A DNA stretch of 64,000 nt. Source: Rebecca billardiae RCC1528 (lineage: Eukaryota > Protista > Haptophyta). The position numbers and the translations under genes are program-made. The stretch is from positions 4,464,001-4,528,000 of the forward strand of contig OZ251223.1 in NCBI GenBank assembly GCA_965240325.2. The letters are read 5' to 3'. The notes under the pieces are model-generated. The model was not told where the DNA came from. It made no database searches and saw only the letters and a list, made by a program, of their open reading frames with translations. This document shows positions 1 through 33,744 of this stretch, piece by piece. Every line of letters begins with the position of its first letter. The first letter of the stretch is position 1.

Positions 1-2335
1 TGGATTGCGGCCGGAGCCCGCGCGAGCCCGGATTTCGTTACAAAACTCCACGGCGAGCACGATCCTGAGGCAATCCGACTATAGGATTTGGCGCACCAGG
101 GCTCGCGCGCAGGCCGCCGAGTGCACGTGTCGTGTAGGCTTGTCGTGGTGCTCGTGGCAGCACGCGCGCGCGCGTGGGCGCCCAACACGGCCTGAGAGTG
201 CGCCGAGCGCATCCGATGAGTACACCGCGTGCTTATGGGTCTCGTCGGCCTGCCCCGACGGGCGGTTGGCGGTGTTGAGCCCGCCCGTATCGATGTTGTG
301 CCCTCCGTCGTGGGACGACGCAAGCGAGCGCAGCCCCTCGGGAGCCTCAGCCATGCGGCTGCACTTAGCACAGCGCGCGATGAGTGCGGCGGCGCCTTCG
401 AGATACGCCGTACGGAGCTTGCCGCCATCCCGGATGACCTCTCGCTCGTGCTTGACGGTGGTGTTCGCCTGCTTGATCCACTTGTCGTCGCCGTTGACGG
501 CGTGCCGGCACTTCTCGGCCTCGGCCATCGACTCAGACACCTTGCGCTGGTCGTTGTCCATGTCGCGCGCGTCTGTGAGGTCTCTTCGGGTGCGCATGGT
601 CCTCACGCGCACCGCCTCGCGCGCGAGATCGCGGCATATCACGCCCAGGTCCTCCTTCGGCGCGTCCTTGCGCGTGCGCCGGGCGGCGGCGCCATGCTGT
701 TTGAACGGTTTGGTGGGCGGCGTCCGGATTCCCAGACGACAACCTTAAAATCGGTCCAGGACCGCCGCCCCACCCGCACCAGCCGCCGACGCCCACATCC
801 CACGCCGCCGCCAAGAGCGCGGCGGCTGCGGGCACGCCTCCCCGGGCTCCCACGCTCCGCCACACATCGTCAGGTGGCGGCCTGCCGCTTGGACTCGTGA
901 TCGGAGTGGGCTTGGGGTGAGCGCGTCGACTATGACGTGGACGTGGTAGCTCACGACGTAAGCTCGACCGCGTGCTCACGCTGGCCTACGTCGCACAGAC
1001 GGTGCGAAGAGGCTGCTGTGGACGGCGGCTGCCGGAGTCTGCGTGCTCGGCCGCAGCACCCCGTGCGCGCAGGTGATCTGCGAGGTGGGCACAGCGGCGA
1101 GCGCATCAACTGCGTGGCGCGCGAGCCCGATGAGCTCAAGAGCTCATCCAACCACGGCTCATGTCAAGACCAAAGCCGCTGCGCGGAGCCTCGGCGCAGC
1201 ATGCCGCCTTGCCGTCTGCGCGACGCCATGTGCGACTGCGCAACCTTGAACAGGCTGGCCGCCCGCCTGCAGCGGCTTTAGTGACGTGGTGGCGGGATCA
1301 TCCGTAATGCTCCGGCCCGTGTGTAGTCAGGCACATTATGCCCTGGCACCGGCAGCGGCACCGGCGGGGCGGACGGCGGTGGCCGCCTTGGCGCCTTCGT
1401 GACAGTGAGCGCGGGACTGAATGATGGCCACTGGAGTGACTAGACCCACGTGCCTGCCTTGCCCGACACCTCGTCGCGCGCTCGCGTGACTAACGCTCAA
1501 GTGGTGCATGCGCCGTATGGCATACGCCTCAGCGCCTGTCCACCACGGCGACGTGTTCCATGCCACCAGCCTAGCGTCCCCATCGGGCTTGCTTCGTGCA
1601 TGCACGCATCCGGCCAATCGACAGGCGGCGGCGGCGCGTTCCAGAGCATGCGCTGATGAGTGTTGATCCGTGACCTGCGCACTATCTGCGGACCGCTCGC
1701 TCCGGCAGCAGACTGTGCGCACGGACGAGGCCGAAGCCCTGCGGGCGCTAGAACGTGCCTTGCGCATGTCGACTACTCCGTACTCGCGCATTGGCGCCTG
1801 CCCAGCTGTTGGCGTAGTGCGCGGCGATCATCGCGCCGTCAGCCTCCCCGCCAGCCACGGCCACGAGCGGAAAGCCGAAAGCGCCGCCATCTTGGCCGTC
1901 GTTGGGACTTGGGAACTTGGGCGACAGTCTTGTCTCACACTGCAAGACTTGTCTCGCCTCGAGTGTCGAGTCCCGGTCCGACTCCAGAAGTCCAGAGATG
2001 ATTTTGCTTGATTTTGCCCTTTCTGGACGGCCTTTCAAAAGCGGAATCTCCGGAAAGCAAGACAGCTGGCACACAGCGAACCAAAAACTCCGAGAGGAAA
2101 CTCATGCTCCCGCAAAGCGATCACCGGGCGGCTGTTCAAGCCGCCCGTCCGCCAGCTGCTTTTGGCACATTCGTCTTTATTTATTGGATGGGATGACAAT
2201 CATCAGATTGAATTCTGTCTTGGTGAGCAGCGTCGCGGCATTGGTCGCGGGTGGGCAGCCCACTGATGACCGCTGATACTGTTCAGTACGGTCAGTGTGA
2301 TGATCGACCACTGGCACTAGGCACTACTACCGAGG

Positions 2336-5017
2336 CTACGACCCCGTGGGCCTCGCCATGCTCTGGCGCGCGAGGACGCGCACCTGCGCGAGGACAGACC
2401 TGCGGTCCACGACGGGCGGCGGCTCCTCGGGCCTCGGCGCAGCGGTGGCGCCCTTGGCGCCCCAGCCTGTGAGCAGCTGCGGCTGCCGCCACAGGGGGCC
2501 GTCCGCGCCCTCCAGCCGCATGGACATGGAGTGCCGCACCTTGCCCGTGCTCACGCTGAACGACGCGCCTGCCTCTAGGCTGCTCGCCGGGCGGCTGAAG
2601 CTCGGCCCCGCCAAGTGTGCCCCAGGGCCCAGCGAGTGCGCGGCCAACTGCGCGGCCTCGGCCTCGCCCGCTCTCCCCTCGCCCTCGCGCTCGCCGCGCT
2701 CGAAGAAGGCGCTCGCCTGCTGCGTGAGCGCTGCGTTGGCGTCGCGAGATGGCCGCCGCTCCATCGCCGAGGCGAGCTGGGCGCCCAGCCCGCTCGCGCT
2801 CTCGTCGGGCTCGCGTGGCGGCGCCTCGCGCCCCTCGCGCTCGGCGAGCCCCTCGGCCGGCGGCGCGGGCGCCGCCCCCGCGCCCCCGCTTCGCCTGGCG
2901 CCGTGCATCGCGCCGAGCATCGCGCTGGTGAGCGCGCGCTCCATGTGCTTGCGGTCGGCCGCATGCACTTTGGTCCGGTCGGTGAAGTCGTGCAGCTTGC
3001 GCGCCTGCGGGGCGGCGCGGGCGGCGCGGGCGGCGGGCGCTCGCTCAGCGAGGCGAGGCGCGCGGGCGCGGCGCGCGGGCGCGGCGCGCTCGCTCGGCGC
3101 GCGCACCGTCGCGAGTGAGTCGAGCAGCTGCGGCACGGCGGCGCACAGCTTGGGCGCGTGCTCCGCGTCCATGCGCAGCAGCCAGGAGGGCTCCCGCGCG
3201 GACACGCTCGCCGAGCGCGCGCCGCCGCCCTCGAGCACCGTCTCGCCGAGCATCGGCGCGTGCCCGTCGTGCCGCGGCTCGAGCGTCGCCACGAGCACCT
3301 CGCCCGCGTGCGCGCCCTTCACGCGCACGTCCAGGCTGCCCGCCACCAGCACGTACAGGGCGTCCGAGGGCTCGCCCTGCGCACACAGAGGCTGGCCCGC
3401 GCGCAGGCGGAGAGGATGGAAGAGCGGCGCGAGCGAGGCGCGCGCGGCGGCGCTGCGCAGCAGCGCGGCCTCGAGCTCGCGCGTGCGCTTGAGCAGCTCG
3501 ACCACCACCAGCCGCCTGCAGCCGGCGCGCGCAGCCTGCGGCAGCGCCTCTGCCGGGATCAGCATGAGCGCACACCCGTCCGAGGCGGCGCGCGCGGTCG
3601 CGAGGCGCGGCGTGAAGCCGCAGCCCTCGAGGCCGAAGAGCGGCGCGGCGGTGCTCTGCTGCACGCGCCGCTCGTACGTCTCCACCCGGCCGGAGTGGTC
3701 GCGCACCTCCAGCACGCCCGCCAGCAGCACGCCCACCGAGGGCGCGGGCGCGCCCTCCCTGAACACGACGTGGTGCCGCGCGTGCACGCTGTACCGTGCG
3801 CACGCGCACAGGCGCTCGAGCTCGGCGCGGCTGAGCGAGGCGAAGGGCGGCGTCACGCCGAGGATCGCGACGAAGCGCTCGACGTGCTCGCTCGCGTCGC
3901 CCTCGCCAAACGCCGACTCGTCCGCGTCCGGCTCGTCCGGCGCGCCCAGCGGCGCCAGCGGCCCGCCGCGGTCTGGCGCGTGCGCGGGCGACGTGCGCTG
4001 AGAGGCGGCCCCGGAGGCGCCGGAGGCGCCGCTCGGCGCGCCGGAGCCGACCAGGCTCACTCGGTACGGCGTGACCGGCTTGGGCGTGCCGCCGTCGCTC
4101 AGAGAGCTCTGCGAGGTCGAGCGCGGGATCGAGGCGCGGAACGACCCGCCGAGCGCCGCCGACGCCCCCGCGAGCTGCGCCGGGCGCAGCGCCTCCTCGA
4201 AGAGCGACCCCCGGATCGAGCCCAGGTCGTGGTGCGAGGACACGGAGCGGCGCAGCGACGCAGGCCGGAGCGCGGAGGCGGACTGCGGCGACATCGAGGG
4301 CGCGCGACTGAGCGACGGGCGCGAGGTGAAGGATGGCGTCGACCTGAGCACGCCCACGCCGTCCTCCCCCGGCAGCGCGACGGGCGGCGGGATGGCGAAG
4401 TCGTCGTCCGGTCCCTCGTCCAGCGCCCCGAGCCGATCGTCGAGCGACCGCGCCGGGCTCGGGGGCAGCGGCGGCGCGAGCGTCGGCTCGGAGGCGGAGG
4501 CCGGCAGCGGCGGCGCGGCGTCGGCGGGCGCGGACGGCGCGGCGCCGGCGGGAGACAGCGCGTGGCCCACACTCCACGACGCGCTCTGGCCCCGCTCGTC
4601 GTCCGGGGCGGCTGGCGTCGCCCCGGGCGGGAGCGGTCGGAGCGCGTGCGCGGTCGCGGCGCGCGAATGCAGCGGGCGCATCCGCGCGGACGCGCCCAGG
4701 GAGCGGCGGCTGGCGAAGAGCTGCCTGTGGTGGTCGACAAAGACACTGTCCCGATCGACCACGGGCTGCGGCCCCGACCGGCTCTTGGTCACCAGCGGCG
4801 GCAGCTGCTGAGTGCGCTGGCCGGCGTGCCGCCGCGGGCCCGCCGCCACCGAGCGCAGCGTGCGCGCCTCCGGCTCCGGCGTGGGCGGCGGCGCGCGGGC
4901 CGGCACGACGGCGAAGCGCGGCTTGGGAGCGGTGGACGCCTCCGCGTCCGATGGCGCGGGCGGGGCGCCCGCGCCGCTGCCCGCCACGTGCAGGAAGGCG
5001 CGCTGCGGCGCGATCAT
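2336..5017 (-). CDS. Protein with two cyclic-nucleotide-binding (cNMP/CAP) domains and long low-complexity termini; one in-frame intron 3005-3106
   Basis: Motifs 'PPFASLSRAELERL...VVFREGAPAPSVGVLLAGVLEV...FGLEG..PRLATARA' and 'LCAQGEPSDALYVLVAGSLDV...LGETVLEGGGARSASVSA'. The intron has GTGCGC...CTGAG...CAG and is 102 nt. Start is uncertain (ATG at 5017 or 5104). Confidence 0.8.
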   Translation of the reverse strand: MIAPQRAFLHVAGSGAGAPPAPSDAEASTAPKPRFAVVPARAPPPTPEPEARTLRSVAAGPRRHAGQRTQQLPPLVTKSRSGPQPVVDRDSVFVDHHRQLFASRRSLGASARMRPLHSRAATAHALRPLPPGATPAAPDDERGQSASWSVGHALSPAGAAPSAPADAAPPLPASASEPTLAPPLPPSPARSLDDRLGALDEGPDDDFAIPPPVALPGEDGVGVLRSTPSFTSRPSLSRAPSMSPQSASALRPASLRRSVSSHHDLGSIRGSLFEEALRPAQLAGASAALGGSFRASIPRSTSQSSLSDGGTPKPVTPYRVSLVGSGAPSGASGASGAASQRTSPAHAPDRGGPLAPLGAPDEPDADESAFGEGDASEHVERFVAILGVTPPFASLSRAELERLCACARYSVHARHHVVFREGAPAPSVGVLLAGVLEVRDHSGRVETYERRVQQSTAAPLFGLEGCGFTPRLATARAASDGCALMLIPAEALPQAARAGCRRLVVVELLKRTRELEAALLRSAAARASLAPLFHPLRLRAGQPLCAQGEPSDALYVLVAGSLDVRVKGAHAGEVLVATLEPRHDGHAPMLGETVLEGGGARSASVSAREPSWLLRMDAEHAPKLCAAVPQLLDSLATVRAPSERAAPARRARAPRLAERAPAARAARAAPQARKLHDFTDRTKVHAADRKHMERALTSAMLGAMHGARRSGGAGAAPAPPAEGLAEREGREAPPREPDESASGLGAQLASAMERRPSRDANAALTQQASAFFERGEREGEGRAGEAEAAQLAAHSLGPGAHLAGPSFSRPASSLEAGASFSVSTGKVRHSMSMRLEGADGPLWRQPQLLTGWGAKGATAAPRPEEPPPVVDRRSVLAQVRVLARQSMARPTGS

Positions 5018-10444: not shown

Positions 10445-12285
10445 GGAGCGCGATCCACCTGCGCTGCGCGGCTCGCATGGACCTGCTGTGCCCCGAGCGA
10501 GGGCGAGGGTGCAGGTCCGGATGTCAGACGGCCGTCTCAGCCGCTGGGCCCTGGCGGGTGATCCGGCGGTGATGTAGTCGTCCCCGTGTGCCCTGCGCGG
10601 CCGCGTGCGCGCTTGCCGCTCTGCTCAGCTGGCTTGCTGGCGGCGGCTGGCGCTGCTGCGGCGTGCAGGGTACGCTTTGCCCCCGACTGCTGCGCATCCT
10701 CGTCGTCCGAGTCGTCGTCCATGGACGAGTCTCGGTCCGCGTGGGGGACAGCAACTGGGCGCAGGAATTTCGGGTGGGGATTTTCTTTTCCGAATATGTT
10801 GGTGATGCCGTCAGAGCACCACCAACCTCTGCCGCTGGCGGCTGCGCTGACAGCGCGCTGGGCGGCGCTGGAGGGGCGAGATGGGCGCCGACTGCGCGCC
10901 CTCCTGCGGTAGTTGCGTGCCCGCGAAGGCGGTGCGCGTGGTTGAGCGCGGCTGAAGAGCAGCCATTTGCGTCGTTCTACCGCTCGCCGTTCGGAATCAC
11001 TGCATCCGCCGCGCCTCAGGCCATCGCGTGCGCCGCACCAACAAGGAAGTTGTGTGCATTCCTCGGCTGACTGCACGCGTGCCGCGAGCAGCGGCGTCGG
11101 CGTCCGGCACTTGGTTGCACCGGGCAATGTCCAGGTAGTTTATGCACGCGGCATCGCTCGTCACAGTACGCTGCCTGGCATACGCATCTGCACGGGTCAC
11201 ACAGCCGTCAAAAGGCATGATCGAGCATCACGCAGCGGTTGGCATCGACCTACGGCGAGGGTCATGTGAGCATGCAAAGCACGGACATGCGCCCTTCTGG
11301 ATAGTGATGTAGTGAGCATATTCCCGCGTGAAAGGAGCGCGCGCCATTCAGGCACCGGAAGCGGCGTCGGGGCTGGATGCTCACGTCTTAGGCAGGCTGA
11401 TGCTGCCTTCCGGCTGCACGGGTGCGTCTATCAAGGCTGACCGTGTGTGCACGATGCGCACCGTCAAGTTCGACACGAACGTCCAGACGTGAGCTACTGC
11501 TTGACAAGGTAGTATACACACATTCATACACGCGCCGTGTCATCCGAGGAGGCACATACACGCAGGCCATCATGGGCCTCGTTCAGGTATATTCTGCATC
11601 AGCACGCATGCATGCACGTACTAGCTCGGGCCAAGATTGACGTCGGAGCACGAGTCAGGGAGTTCAATGCCGGGGCAGAGCTGGACAGCGGTCACGTGTG
11701 TGGCCACTCCGCGCGAGCGCACATGCTCCGCGTCACCGCATATCAGCATGGCGTGCGCTGCAACGTCATCGTCGGGCCAGAGCGCTTGTTCGACCAATCG
11801 GCTCGTATGAATGATGCAATCAGCACACCTGAACGCAGCTGTTCGGACCCGCGCTCATGCGCGGCGGCGCAAGGTAGCGCAGTGCGTACAGCGTAGGCCT
11901 CGCCGCGCGGAAGCGCATGCTCCGTGTGTGTCTCGCCTCGCATGGCGCACGCGGGCGAGGCTGGCCGTGTGGCGGTGTGCACAGACAAGTGCTGGCCCGA
12001 GGCAAGTACAGCCGAATGCGATGCGCGGCGCGAAGCGGCGAATGGCACTTCAGCACGACTGCCCAGCCTAGCTCGCCGGCTCTGCGCTCGCGGGATCGTC
12101 CACACGCACGGGAGCGCGGCGCCGTCGCCCGCTCGCCCGAGACGCGCGCGTCCGCCGCGCAGCGCGCGGCTGAATAAATGCAAGGCGGAAATAAAAAGCG
12201 CGCCGATTTTCTGATTTCTCCGACCCTGGGTGCCGTGTCCCCAGTGGGGTACAGCGGTCCTTGCTCCTCGGTAGTCCCGAAAGTC

Positions 12286-13251
12286 ATGGCGGCGGCGGCG
12301 CCCGACGATGTGCGCGTCAGCGTGGGCGGCGGCGGCGGCGAGAGGCGCGCGGCCGACCTGATCCTGGCGGTCGCGGGCAACGACCGCTGCGCCGACTGCC
12401 AGTCCACGCGCGAGCCCGTCTGGGCGTCGAGCAACCTCGGCGTCGTCTTCTGCATCGCGTGCTCGGGCGTGCACCGCTCGCTGGGCGCGCACCTCTCGGC
12501 CGTGCTCTCGCTCTACCTGGACGACTGGACGGAGGAGCAGGTGGCGCGCATGCGCGCGCTGGGCAACGCGCGCGTGAACGAGGAGCTCGAGGCGCGGCTG
12601 CCCGACGGCGTGCGCAAGCCCGCCGAGGCCGCCGAGCCGCACGAGCGCGAGGCGTTCATCCGCGCCAAGTACGAGCTGCGCTCCTTCACGCGCACGGGCA
12701 GCGGCAGGGTGCCGCTGATCTCGCGCGCGTCGGACTCGACGGCGGGGATGCTCGAGGCGATCGGCGTGCTCTTCGTCCGCGTGATCTCCGCCGCCAACCT
12801 CGTCTCGATGGACGCCGTCTCGCAGTCAGACCCGTACGTCGTGCTGTCGCTCGGCGGGCAGAGCATGCGCACGCGCGTCGTGCACAACGACAACGCGCCC
12901 ACGTGGGAGGAGACGGTGAGCCTCAACGTGCCCGACGCGCGCGGCGCGGCGGAGGCGCACGAGCTGCGCCTCGCCGTGTGGGACCACGACTCACTCGGCG
13001 AGGACAAGCTCATCGGCCGCGCGAGCGTGAGCGTGCGCGACGCGGTGCGCGCGCCCGGCGTGCCGACCGCGGTGGGCGCGAGCCTCGAGCTCTCGGCAGA
13101 GGCGGCGCGGCTCGCGCAGCGCGGCGGCAACTTCGCCGCGCGGTACCTGGCCTGCCTGCTGCCGAGCAAGGGGCGGCACAGCAGGGGCGCGCCGAGCACG
13201 ATCGCGCTCGAGCTCAACTTCTCCTCGCTCAGCGCGCCCAGCAAACGATAA
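12286..13251 (+). CDS. ArfGAP zinc finger + C2 domain protein (plant AGD11-13/ZAC-like architecture)
   Basis: 'NDRCADC...PVWASSNLGVVFCIACSGVHRSLGAHLSAVLSLYLDDW', 'EAFIRAKYE'; C2 domain 'LFVRVISAANLVSMD..SQSDPYVVL...NAPTWEE...VWDHDSLGEDKLIG'. Confidence 0.93.
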   Translation: MAAAAPDDVRVSVGGGGGERRAADLILAVAGNDRCADCQSTREPVWASSNLGVVFCIACSGVHRSLGAHLSAVLSLYLDDWTEEQVARMRALGNARVNEELEARLPDGVRKPAEAAEPHEREAFIRAKYELRSFTRTGSGRVPLISRASDSTAGMLEAIGVLFVRVISAANLVSMDAVSQSDPYVVLSLGGQSMRTRVVHNDNAPTWEETVSLNVPDARGAAEAHELRLAVWDHDSLGEDKLIGRASVSVRDAVRAPGVPTAVGASLELSAEAARLAQRGGNFAARYLACLLPSKGRHSRGAPSTIALELNFSSLSAPSKR

Positions 13252-29505: not shown

Positions 29506-30417
29506 ATGGCGGCGACGCGCTTCGTGCTTGTGACGGGCGGGAACAAGGGGATCGGCTATGCCATCTGCGAGCGGCTGCTGGCGGAGCACGCGGACACGCA
29601 CGTCTTCCTGGGCGCGCGCGATGCGGCGCGTGGGCAGGCGGCGGCCGACAAGCTCGGCGCGAGCGCGGCTGGGCGGGTGGCGTTCGTCCAGATCGACGTC
29701 GGGTCGGACGCGTCGGTGAGCGCGGCCGCGGAGGCGGTGAAGGCCAAGCTCGGCGGCGAGAAGCTGTACGGCATCGTGCACAACGCCGGGCTCTTCACCG
29801 GCTCGAAGCTGAGCGAGGTGCTCTCGGTGAACGTGCGCGGGCCGATGCGCGTCACGCGCGCGTTCGAGCCGCTCCTGCGCGCCGAGGGCGGGCGCGTGGT
29901 GGTCGTGTCCTCGGCGTCGGGGCCCAACTTCGTCGCCGCGAGCAAGGTGCCCGAGACGGTGGCGCGCCTCACCGACGCCAAGCTCAGCCTGGCGCAGGCG
30001 AGTGCGATGGCGGACGAGTGCGAGGCGCTGGCGGCCGCGGGCGCGGACGGCTCCGCCTTCCTCGCCAAGGGGTACGGCTCGGGCATGATGGGCGAGATGG
30101 AGGGGTACGGGCTGTCGAAGGCGCTCGTCAACGCGTACACGCTCGCCCTCGCGCACGAGCGCCCCGCCCTGCTCGTCTCCGCGTGCACGCCCGGCTTCAT
30201 CGAGACCGACCTCACGCGCGGCTTTGCGATCGCGCAGGGCCAGACGCCGCAGGAGATGGGGATGAAGAGCCCGCACGAGGGCGCGAGCGCGCCGCTGCAC
30301 TGCCTGATCGCCGAGCTGCCTGGCTCGGGGCTGTACTGGGGCTCCGACTGCAAGCGCTCCCCGCTGCACAAGTACCGCGGCCCGGGCGAGCCCGAGTACA
30401 CGGGCACCGACCAGTAA
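29506..30417 (+). CDS. Short-chain dehydrogenase/reductase, carbonyl-reductase-like
   Basis: 'VLVTGGNKGIG', 'VHNAG', 'VVVSSASG', catalytic 'YGLSK', 'CTPGFIETDL'. Confidence 0.93.
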   Translation: MAATRFVLVTGGNKGIGYAICERLLAEHADTHVFLGARDAARGQAAADKLGASAAGRVAFVQIDVGSDASVSAAAEAVKAKLGGEKLYGIVHNAGLFTGSKLSEVLSVNVRGPMRVTRAFEPLLRAEGGRVVVVSSASGPNFVAASKVPETVARLTDAKLSLAQASAMADECEALAAAGADGSAFLAKGYGSGMMGEMEGYGLSKALVNAYTLALAHERPALLVSACTPGFIETDLTRGFAIAQGQTPQEMGMKSPHEGASAPLHCLIAELPGSGLYWGSDCKRSPLHKYRGPGEPEYTGTDQ

Positions 30418-31122: not shown

Positions 31123-31962
31123 TCAGCCCTTGAGCTGCTTGCACAGCCAGTCGAGCCCCTCGAAGAGCCCGTCGCCCGTGGCTGCGCTGCACGCCTGGAT
31201 GTGCCACGCGTGCCCCTGGATCTCCTCCAGCCCGAGCGCCTCGCAGATGGCGTACACGTCGGCCGCGCCCGCCATGTCCTGCTTGTTGGCGAGCACGAGC
31301 ACCGACGCCGCCTCCATCTCGGGAAGCGCGAGCATCTGCTGCAGCTCCGAGCCTGCGCGCCGCGCGATGCGCGCGCGAGCGGCGCCGCGTGAGGCGGGCG
31401 CGCGCTGGCCGAGCCCGGCGGCGCGCGGCGCGCACCAGCCTCCTCGAGGCGGTCCTTGTCGTTGGAGTCCACGACGAAGATGAGCGAGTCCGTGTTTCGG
31501 CAGTAGTGCCGCCACAGGGGGCGGATCTTCTCCTGGCCGCCCACGTCCCACACCGTCATCTCGAGGTTGCGGTACTTGAGGCTCTCCGCGTTGAAGCCGA
31601 TCGTGGGCGCGGTCGTGATGTACTTGTTGAGCTTCAGCCTGTAGAGCACTGCGCGGGGCGCGGCGGGGGAGGGGTCGAGTGGCCGCGGGCGTGTTGGCGC
31701 GCCGCGCAGCAGGCGTGCTCGCCGATGGGTCGCGCGCTCGACGTGCGCGCTGGCTCGCGCGCGCGCGGCGCGGGCGGGCGTGCGGACCGGTGGTCTTGCC
31801 CGAGCCGTCCAGGCCGAGCATGAGGATGCGCACGTTGCGGTTCAGGACGAGCGCGCCAAGGATCTTTGAGAACGCCGAGCCGCCCTCCGCCACGCCCGCC
31901 AACGTGGCGAGCGCGACGAACGTGGCGAGTATCAAGCGCCGCGCGACACGTGTCGTCGCCAT
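31123..31962 (-). CDS. ADP-ribosylation-factor (Arf) family GTPase with an N-terminal signal-peptide-like extension; introns 31649-31787 and 31353-31435
   Basis: '[13 protein letters not shown]|[62 protein letters not shown]'. Confidence 0.93.
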
Positions 31963-32277
31963 CGTCAATGACCGTCGTCGCGTGAACCACCGGACGCGTC
32001 ATCGGCGGCGGCGGGCGGCGGTGCCTAGAAATGCTTTTTCTGCCATCAACAAATCGAATTCTGGGCAGATTGTCGATTCTTCCGGAGATGACGATTTCCC
32101 AGATTCCCTCCCTCCCTGGCCAGCGCGCAAACACTGAAACGCGGTCCGCGAAGACCATGATTAGAGCGAATGAACGCTTTGCCGGCCAAAGTTCAGCGTG
32201 ACCCTTGTCATGAGGCGGTCCACTCCCTCGGCGACGCACGTCCTCCCAGGTCAAGGGGCTGCGTAGCGCACGCCCGG

Positions 32278-33744
32278 ATGCACGGCGGGCCGGATGACAT
32301 GCCGCCGCGGCGGAGGGCGTTGCTGCTCCTCGCGGCGGCCGTTTCGATCGTGGCGCTCTCGGGGGCCGTCTTCGGCTGGCCCGCCATGCGCCGCATCGCG
32401 CGGCGCGACGGGCTGCTCGTGGACACGTGCGACGCCGCGCACGACGCTGACACGGACGAGCCGTGCCCCGCGCAGGAGCTGGCGTTCGGCGTGATCTACA
32501 CGGTGGGCTCGTGGGCCAACCAGGCTGCCCGGCTGCCCGTCGGCGCGCTCCTCGACCGCGTCGGCCCGAGGCGCACGGTGCTGCTCGCCGCGCTCACGTT
32601 TGCGGCCGGCTCGGTCGTGTTTGGGTTTGACAGCTCGCTCGGCGGGCTGGCGCTCGGGTACGGGCTGATCGGGATGGGCGGCGCGGGGATCCAGCTCGCG
32701 GTGCAGTCGACGTCGGCCCTGTTCCCGCGCAACCGCTCCGCCGCGATGGCGACCCTCTCGGGCGCCTTCCAGTTCTCGTCGCTCGTGTACTTGCTGTTTG
32801 AGGGCGCGCACGGCGCGCTCGGCCTCAGCCGCGCGGCGCTCATGACGGGGCACGCGCTGGTGGCGACCGTCGTCGGGGGCGCGGGGCTGTGCCTGTGGCG
32901 CGACACGCCGTTCGGCCTGCGCGCGCCGCGCGCGGCCGCCGCGCCCGCCGCCGCCGCCGCGCCGAGCGCGAGCGCGGCGAGTGCGGCCCTGCTCGAGGCG
33001 GGCTCCTTCCGGCAGCAGGCGCTGTCCGCCGAGTACGCGCTGATGCTCGCCTTCTTCTGCCTGCACATGCTGCCGGCGCAGTTCACCGTGGGCACGATGG
33101 GCACGCAGCTCGAGCTCAAGGGCGACTCGGACGGCGCCGCCACGCGCGGGTACGCCACCATCTTCGCCGCGTCCGCGCTGATCACGCCGGGCGTCGGCCA
33201 CCTGATCGACCGGCTCGGCTTCCCCGCGATGATGGTGGCGGTCACGCTCGCGCTCGCGGGGAGCTACGCCATCCTGATCGCGCCGTCGCTCGAGGCGCAG
33301 TGGGCGGCGTTCGTGCTCTACGCGTGCGGCCGCGTCTCGCTGTGGGCCATCTTCTTCTCGTACGTCGGCGTGGCGTTTGGGTTCCGCCACTACGGCAAGC
33401 TGGCGGGCGGCGGTCTGTTTGTGGGCGCGTGCATCTCGCTGCTGCAGTACGCGGCGCTCACCGCGACGTTCGGCGAGAGCGGCGGCGACTTTGCGCCGGT
33501 GAACGCGGCGTGGTGCGCGCTCGCCCTGCTCTCGCTCGTGCCGGCCACGCTGCTCGGCCGGCGGATACATCGCGCCGCCGCGGCCGACCGTGCGAGCTCC
33601 GCACGGCAGCGGCCCGGCGCGGACAGCGAGCTCGCAGCCGGGCGGCAGCCCAGCGGCACGCAGCAGCCTGCCGACCTCGGCGGCGGCAGCGCGGACTGGG
33701 ATGCAGCGGCGCCCGATCGCGCGAAGGCCGACCCGCGCAGGTAG
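32278..33744 (+). CDS. MFS transporter, SLC43/LAT3-Fmp42-like
   Basis: About 12 hydrophobic segments; 'SGAVFGWPA', Cys-bounded loop 'C...C.AQE', 'GALLDRVGPR', 'GHLIDRLG', 'FGFRHYGKLAG'. Start is 32278 or 32299. Confidence 0.85.
   Translation: MHGGPDDMPPRRRALLLLAAAVSIVALSGAVFGWPAMRRIARRDGLLVDTCDAAHDADTDEPCPAQELAFGVIYTVGSWANQAARLPVGALLDRVGPRRTVLLAALTFAAGSVVFGFDSSLGGLALGYGLIGMGGAGIQLAVQSTSALFPRNRSAAMATLSGAFQFSSLVYLLFEGAHGALGLSRAALMTGHALVATVVGGAGLCLWRDTPFGLRAPRAAAAPAAAAAPSASAASAALLEAGSFRQQALSAEYALMLAFFCLHMLPAQFTVGTMGTQLELKGDSDGAATRGYATIFAASALITPGVGHLIDRLGFPAMMVAVTLALAGSYAILIAPSLEAQWAAFVLYACGRVSLWAIFFSYVGVAFGFRHYGKLAGGGLFVGACISLLQYAALTATFGESGGDFAPVNAAWCALALLSLVPATLLGRRIHRAAAADRASSARQRPGADSELAAGRQPSGTQQPADLGGGSADWDAAAPDRAKADPRR

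Follow-up and report, generated by a model that had tools for sequence, protein, structure and literature searches.

A conserved N-terminal leader resembling a signal peptide on an Arf GTPase of pavlovophyte haptophytes

The window, a stretch of 64,000 nucleotides from a eukaryotic genome with a G+C content of ~70%, encodes an Arf GTPase in which the Met-Gly start of the family is replaced by a basic and hydrophobic leader of 27 residues. The leader keeps its layout among orthologues and is built like the leaders of lumenal proteins of the same genome, and we lean toward the view that it is an ER signal sequence, most likely a cleaved one. It is a defining trait of Arf GTPases that they act at the cytosolic membrane face by way of a myristoylated Gly2. 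If this protein enters the ER, it would be a conserved, strongly constrained Arf that breaks the cytosolic-face rule, and it could indicate trafficking machinery in the chloroplast-ER lumen or the periplastid space, where none is known.

The family and its unusual N-terminus were published in 2021. Vargová et al. (PMC8358228; Genome Biol Evol 13:evab157) named the group Arf1TM (Suppl. Fig. S17B, Table S6) and listed it from P. gyrans, Pavlovales sp. CCMP2436, D. lutheri, E. gayraliae and P. pinguis, with the P. pinguis orthologue entered as lacking Gly2 in their predictors. They interpreted the N-terminal segment as a transmembrane anchor by means of TMHMM, grouped Arf1TM with SRβ and Arl10, and mentioned neither signal peptides nor plastids. 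Our literature search found no later publication on the group. What is new here is the argument, made from conservation and from same-genome controls, that the supposed anchor is more probably a signal peptide of the cleavable kind, together with two candidate companions, an ArfGAP with a leader and a transmembrane (TM) segment and a second N-myristoyltransferase (NMT). Because the published account took the segment as an anchor and left signal peptides out of account, the two readings predict opposite membrane sides for the G-domain.

Gene structure and the N-terminal leader

The Arf1TM gene lies on the minus strand at 31962-31123 of the window and has three exons, with a coding sequence of 618 nt that specifies a protein of 205 amino acids. 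Its features are the following.

31999..32001, minus strand: in-frame TGA that shuts the frame 13 codons before the Arf1TM ATG
31962-31960, minus strand: start codon ATG, which opens exon 1
31788..31962, minus strand: exon 1, coding for leader, helix and P-loop (GLDGSGKTT), with a phase-1 end at a GT donor
31882..31962, minus strand: leader, codons 1-27, with three Arg in the n-region, a 16-residue uncharged h-region, and A-E-G before the candidate cleavage site
31834..31881, minus strand: Arf N-terminal amphipathic helix, the first Gly of which matches Gly2 of canonical Arf1 by alignment
31649..31787, minus strand: intron 1, 139 nt, GT..AG, phase 1
31436..31648, minus strand: exon 2, coding for switch I, the interswitch and switch II (Pfam Arf, E 1.5e-29)
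31353..31435, minus strand: intron 2, 83 nt, GT..AG, phase 1
31123..31352, minus strand: exon 3, coding for NKQD, CSA and the C-terminal helix, with the stop codon TGA at 31125-31123 (Pfam Arf, E 3.8e-19)

Each exon matches the Pfam Arf profile (PF00025) above its curated cut-off, exon 1 with an E-value of 1.7e-5 and exons 2 and 3 with the values listed, and the three jointly span profile positions 1-173 of 174, which places the product in the Arf family. The match begins at residue 31, and a Pfam SRPRB match ranks behind it. Both introns terminate in ..GCGCAG. The nucleotide-binding and switch motifs of the spliced protein are intact (P-loop GxxxxGKT, switch I Thr, DxxGQ, NKxD, SA), and alignment to the canonical Arf1 of the same genome shows unbroken G1-G5 motifs, an unbroken hydrophobic face of the helix, and near identity throughout switch I, the interswitch and switch II. 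The gene is real, and its earlier description is confirmed in every detail, including the statement that the only in-frame ATG before the G-domain yields the leader: no further ATG lies between the upstream in-frame TGA (32001-31999) and the start codon, and the next in-frame Met is already within the G-domain (RILMLGLD). A divergent MFS-type transporter gene (window 32296-33744, plus strand) begins ~330 bp upstream, measured between the two start codons, and so leaves little space for an extra 5' exon of Arf1TM. A short-chain dehydrogenase gene (window 29506-30417, plus strand) also flanks the locus.

The leader runs from MATTRVARR through a 16-residue uncharged run to E-G, and a leader of the same kind, basic and hydrophobic as the original prediction had it, is present in every orthologue seen. 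A normal Arf amphipathic helix had been claimed directly behind it, and alignment bears this out: the 12 residues after the leader pair one-to-one with MGLTFSKLFGRLF, the start of the canonical Arf1 of this genome, and because the alignment is ungapped, the Gly that follows E-G is the equivalent of Gly2. Arf1TM itself begins Met-Ala, with its Gly2 equivalent at residue 28, and thus does not have the canonical Met-Gly start. The original prediction had also proposed that cleavage would re-expose this Gly, and the conserved site x-E-G|G, with small residues at -3 and -1, would uncover it exactly. NMT substrates follow the pattern G-x-x-x-S, which the predicted product of this cut, G-S-A-F-S-K, fits. 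Also conserved is a second candidate cut that the original prediction had not considered, G-[SA]-A|F, which would leave Phe as the first residue; both sites conform to the -3/-1 rule in all orthologues. The 25 residues past the E-G|G cut contain three Lys or Arg, and their sole acidic residue is at the last position.

Inspection of the spliced protein showed that its C-terminus lacks an ER-retention signal, so a soluble, cleaved Arf1TM would be secreted unless held. Four Cys (mature residues 81, 139, 157 and 173) are invariant in all Arf1TM orthologues, and three of the four are missing in the MG-start relatives with which they were compared (canonical Arf1, P0036 and P0084). The extra Cys would suit an oxidising compartment, which is a weak hint; disulfides, palmitoylation and metal binding are possible alternative roles for the four.

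Orthologues and origin of the family

A complete transcript ORF, identical to the published P. gyrans entry, is the nearest database protein. It has 96% identity over the best aligned stretch, as measured with the intron-containing query, and 98% over the mature part, and its leader differs in sequence but is equivalent. Clustering at 90% puts annotated proteins from the D. lutheri and CCMP2436 genomes together with this ORF. The leader is expressed in these relatives, being present in transcript-derived proteins of Pavlova gyrans, P. pinguis, Diacronema lutheri, Exanthemachrysis gayraliae and Pavlovales sp. CCMP2436, and it is also found in the Arf1TM proteins of two environmental assemblies. 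The window gene is almost certainly an orthologue of the published group in a further pavlovophyte haptophyte, since its N-terminus is unlike those of all five published species.

The mature part of the window protein is 94-98% identical to those of P. gyrans, D. lutheri and CCMP2436, whereas the leaders of the orthologues share just 35-48% identity. What the leaders have in common is their layout, which we compared in six sequences, two of them from environmental assemblies, and hence in fewer than six named species. Leader length is 22-27 residues, with one to three Arg ahead of the h-region (an Arg within the first six residues, where there is one, is at position 5 or 6) and 13-16 residues in the uncharged run. 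All six have E-G-G, with Ala, Val or Ile at -3 and Gly at -1, and the window protein shares the longer motif E-G-G-[SA]-A-F-S-K with the published group. The E. gayraliae and P. pinguis leaders, taken from the supplement of the 2021 paper, have the same layout.

The D. lutheri Arf1TM locus is syntenic with the window, with D. lutheri counterparts of a kinase gene (34.6-35.8 kb), an Rdx-like gene (28.2-28.9 kb), a small cyclin-like gene (14.0-14.5 kb) and a gene for a protein with ArfGAP and C2 domains (12.7-13.2 kb). The latter, ArfGAP-C2, lies at window 12178-13251 on the plus strand, 19 kb from Arf1TM, and its D. lutheri orthologue is 2.5 kb from Arf1TM (L076 6222-6718). We considered this proximity as a sign of functional linkage and set it aside, as the wider conserved microsynteny probably accounts for it. 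Intron 1 is absent from D. lutheri and CCMP2436, where a single exon (L076 and L077, 3001-3240) covers leader, helix, P-loop and switch I; it was therefore gained or lost within the Pavlovophyceae.

The original prediction had proposed looking for the same extension in haptophytes, cryptophytes and ochrophytes; in the searches run the gene was confined to the Pavlovophyceae. A word-based search for Arf1TM outside this class, with the P. gyrans protein as query, returned only pavlovophyte-like sequences above 60% identity. Longer 'extended' database matches were rejected as orthologues because they are ordinary Arf1 proteins with a translated 5' UTR and an internal MG. The Arf1TM group also includes a metagenome gene model that has been automatically named SRβ.

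The genome examined (72 Mb in 41 contigs) encodes one Arf1TM, one canonical Arf1, three Arf1b-like proteins and many Arls. Canonical Arf1 (G000:C1, locus L002) begins MGLTFSK, with ATG-GGG as its first codons, and an MG start was found in every other Arf-family N-terminus recovered, at 9 of 14 paralogous loci, which marks the leader as a specific change and not as a habit of the gene caller. We built a maximum-likelihood tree of 36 rows, in which in-genome paralogues were joined from tblastn pieces with approximate exon junctions and red-algal sequences were not among the rows. The four Arf1TM sequences form a clade (support 100/99) that is nested (96/92) with the three Arf1b-like genes of the same genome and two MG-start sequences, and the signature ESLKY[RK]NL.MT is common to this larger clade. 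Sisterhood of Arf1TM to the Arf1b genes of its own genome is weak (85/17). Within this sampling, the tree gives no hint of a red-algal origin and places Arf1TM among host-type MG-start neighbours. It is nearly certain that Arf1TM is an intact, strongly constrained Arf GTPase descended from MG-start Arf1b-like paralogues. The simplest history, judged from these sequences, would be that an MG-start Arf1b-like gene acquired an upstream start, its ancestral Met1 codon became a Gly codon, and a leader of 22-27 residues was added in front.

Signal peptide, membrane anchor or plastid routing

We judged the leader by classical rules (positive-inside, -3/-1 and h-region length) and by same-genome controls. 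A Sec-type signal peptide has a basic n-region, an h-region of 7-16 residues, and small uncharged residues at -3 and -1, and by rule all six Arf1TM sequences have this layout. The controls were calreticulin, two ER-type Hsp70s, an Hsp70-like protein and two leader-bearing Cdc48 paralogues (sCdc48), the leaders of which consist of an Arg-containing n-region, an Ala/Leu/Val run of 14-16 residues, a small -3/-1 site and then an acidic residue. SRβ, the control for a membrane anchor, starts Met-Asp and has an uncharged run of 19 residues followed by Arg-Arg. The Arf1TM leader resembles those of calreticulin, ER Hsp70 and sCdc48; it is shorter than the SRβ segment and the mirror image of it in charge polarity. 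This likeness to leaders of lumenal proteins, with a polarity opposite to that of SRβ, is why we prefer the signal-peptide reading.

The positive-inside rule and a dependence on length govern the orientation of membrane anchors. Because charge and run length both predict insertion with the N-terminus inside, the G-domain would be translocated whether the leader is cut or not: SRP and Sec61 would insert the leader N-in and place the G-domain on the lumenal side of the ER/chloroplast-ER system. A cut by signal peptidase would follow, most likely at the conserved x-E-G|G, giving an N-terminus with the Gly2 equivalent and a normal amphipathic helix, or alternatively at G-[SA]-A|F, giving Phe as the first residue. 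ER entry and cleavage, and with them any final compartment and function, are what we infer from these features. Several properties of the protein speak against a lumenal G-domain: it lacks a retention signal, and its Arf1-like switch regions and preserved hydrophobic helix face would be easier to understand if it met cytosolic machinery. The exchange factors, GAPs and effectors of Arfs known to us are all cytosolic, and we know of no GTPase cycle in the ER lumen.

The leader could in principle be an artefact of the gene model, with the true mRNA splicing an upstream exon that ends in ATG to the AG before GGC-GGC and so encoding a canonical Met-Gly Arf. There is an AG dinucleotide in front of the Gly-Gly codons, but the sequence ahead of it is unlike the ..GCGCAG with which both real introns end, the short gap to the divergent MFS gene constrains the position of any such exon, and the ancestral Met codon has been lost. 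The original prediction had itself raised this alternative first exon as one thing that would overturn it, and two lines of evidence speak against it: the leader is in frame in complete transcript ORFs of five related species, and leader and helix are encoded contiguously in three genomes, with leader, helix and start of the G-domain in a single exon in D. lutheri and CCMP2436. A concealed Met-Gly exon is very unlikely, to the point of being nearly negligible. Much more deserving of consideration is the published reading, in which the hydrophobic segment stays uncleaved and substitutes for myristate, and the G-domain works in the cytosol on the surface of some organelle with ordinary GEFs and GAPs. 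It draws on the TMHMM-predicted TM region and the grouping with SRβ and Arl10 (Vargová et al. 2021, PMC8358228), on the closeness of switch I, switch II and the interswitch to those of Arf1, and on the 94-98% conservation of the mature part across genera, as expected of a protein with many cytosolic partners; the membrane-spanning ArfGAP described below, conserved in pavlovophytes with a GAP domain that is cytosolic by the positive-inside rule, would be a possible matched partner. The same ArfGAP architecture is present in more distant sequences, however, and so has no particular tie to Arf1TM. With 13-16 residues, the uncharged run is short for a bilayer-spanning helix, and the Arg before it and the invariant Glu after it predict an N-in/C-out orientation, the reverse of SRβ in the same genome. 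By the usual rule for a signal anchor, a run of ~19 residues or more with positive charges C-terminal to it, this SRβ qualifies and Arf1TM does not. TMHMM is known to label signal peptides as N-terminal TM helices, and the 2021 paper is silent on signal peptides. We regard a permanent anchor as possible but doubtful. Of the original interpretation of the leader as a signal peptide, then, the conservation and the cleavable-type construction stand, and the uncleaved anchor of the published reading stands opposed to it. If the anchor reading were true, Arf1TM would be a modest variation on SRβ and Arl10.

A signal peptide could also be the first half of a bipartite signal, with the Arf helix acting as a minimal transit-peptide-like part and the protein serving the periplastid vesicular network. 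Periplastid and plastid pre-sequences consist of a signal peptide and a transit-peptide-like stretch, in which F, Y, W or L at +1 directs a protein to the plastid (PMC12136025) and periplastid proteins have none of these at +1; coat or switch proteins of the periplastid vesicular network have not been identified (PMC5756292, PMC12136025). Arf1TM would have Gly or Phe at +1, according to the choice between its two rule-conforming sites, so that a cut at E-G|G would put it in the periplastid class and a cut at [SA]-A|F in the plastid class. The leader resembles a signal peptide, both cut sites follow the rule in all orthologues, and the helix has three basic residues and no acidic one for 24 positions; in chlorarachniophytes, an Arf1TM with a longer basic spacer past its hydrophobic run resembles a full bipartite signal. 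Against this, the residues after the pavlovophyte leader belong structurally to the Arf fold and a separate transit-peptide-like stretch is absent; the closest database relatives are only pavlovophyte-like sequences, though all haptophytes, ochrophytes and cryptophytes have the compartment; and the tree places the gene with host-type MG-start paralogues. The sCdc48 paralogues of the same genome, candidate periplastid proteins, have a leader followed by ~25 Arg-rich residues, and because Arf1TM has no distinct stretch of this kind, and is confined to pavlovophytes, the periplastid routing suggested in the original prediction finds no support here. We consider it unlikely. The two sCdc48 genes (L073, G000:C12:1390100-1393354; L074, G000:C5:3884348-3887590) are of interest in their own right: RLRGG[AD]DVA closes the Arg-rich stretch in both and may mark the transit-peptide processing site of this lineage.

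Candidate partners and related systems

The genome has seven Sec7 loci and 12 ArfGAP loci, one of which encodes a protein with a leader and a TM segment (L039, G000:C3:1027956-1031168; exon 1 at 1507-2352, minus strand). One exon of this ArfGAP gene encodes, in order, a leader, ~120 residues rich in Ser, Thr, Pro, Lys and Arg in which the motif HPTVPRSRL is conserved, a Gly-rich TM-like segment that hardly varies, and the GAP zinc finger. The layout is kept in D. lutheri, CCMP2436 and other assemblies (P0141-P0146), and a profile of the region preceding the GAP domain also finds more distant proteins of the same plan (P0151, P0153, P0155 and P0156). By its charge distribution the GAP domain should face the cytosol. 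We therefore rejected this protein as evidence for a lumenal Arf cycle, its architecture being present in distant sequences as well. To our knowledge, no membrane-spanning ArfGAP subfamily has been described.

Two NMT genes are present in the genome, the second of which is divergent (L071, G000:C23:1045278-1048721; ORF 1381-2688, plus strand). It is a single-exon gene for a protein of 435 amino acids with NMT and NMT_C domains, residues 30-416 of which align to solved NMTs, and a leader-like, Ala/Leu-rich start, MAAARLALAVALL...ASA|GF, replaces the usual N-terminal region. The protein is a singleton in 90% clusters, a metagenome scan found no relatives of it, and among its Atlas look-alikes NMT-like clusters of giant viruses predominate. 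With no orthologue retrieved and look-alikes of this kind, a connection between the second NMT and Arf1TM is only an idea. In its fullest form, the leader would be cut at E-G|G, the Arf would reside in the chloroplast-ER lumen or, with its own helix serving as a minimal transit peptide, in the periplastid compartment, and the exposed Gly would be post-translationally myristoylated by the second NMT. This is a long shot; if true, it would for the first time place an Arf switch, and N-myristoylation, beyond the cytosol-facing side of the endomembrane system, and would give a handle on the unidentified vesicle machinery of the periplastid compartment.

Three known proteins invite comparison with the pavlovophyte Arf1TM. 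The chlorarachniophyte Arf1TM is of independent origin (PMC8358228, Suppl. Fig. S17A). Like the pavlovophyte protein, it is an Arf1 paralogue with an N-terminal hydrophobic segment in an alga with a complex plastid; unlike it, it has a short hydrophobic run, then a basic spacer of ~25-45 residues, and then the helix, an arrangement with the look of a complete bipartite signal that is not discussed in PMC8358228. Canonical Arf1 shares with Arf1TM the fold family, G1-G5, the switch sequence, the hydrophobic positions of the amphipathic helix and 55-60% identity, but Arf1TM has a 27-residue leader in place of the Met-Gly start, has three extra invariant Cys, and belongs to a divergent Arf1b-like clade. 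SRβ, finally, also carries an Arf-family G-domain behind a hydrophobic N-terminal segment, but the SRβ of this genome has no amphipathic helix, whereas Arf1TM keeps the helix behind a shorter run of reversed polarity.
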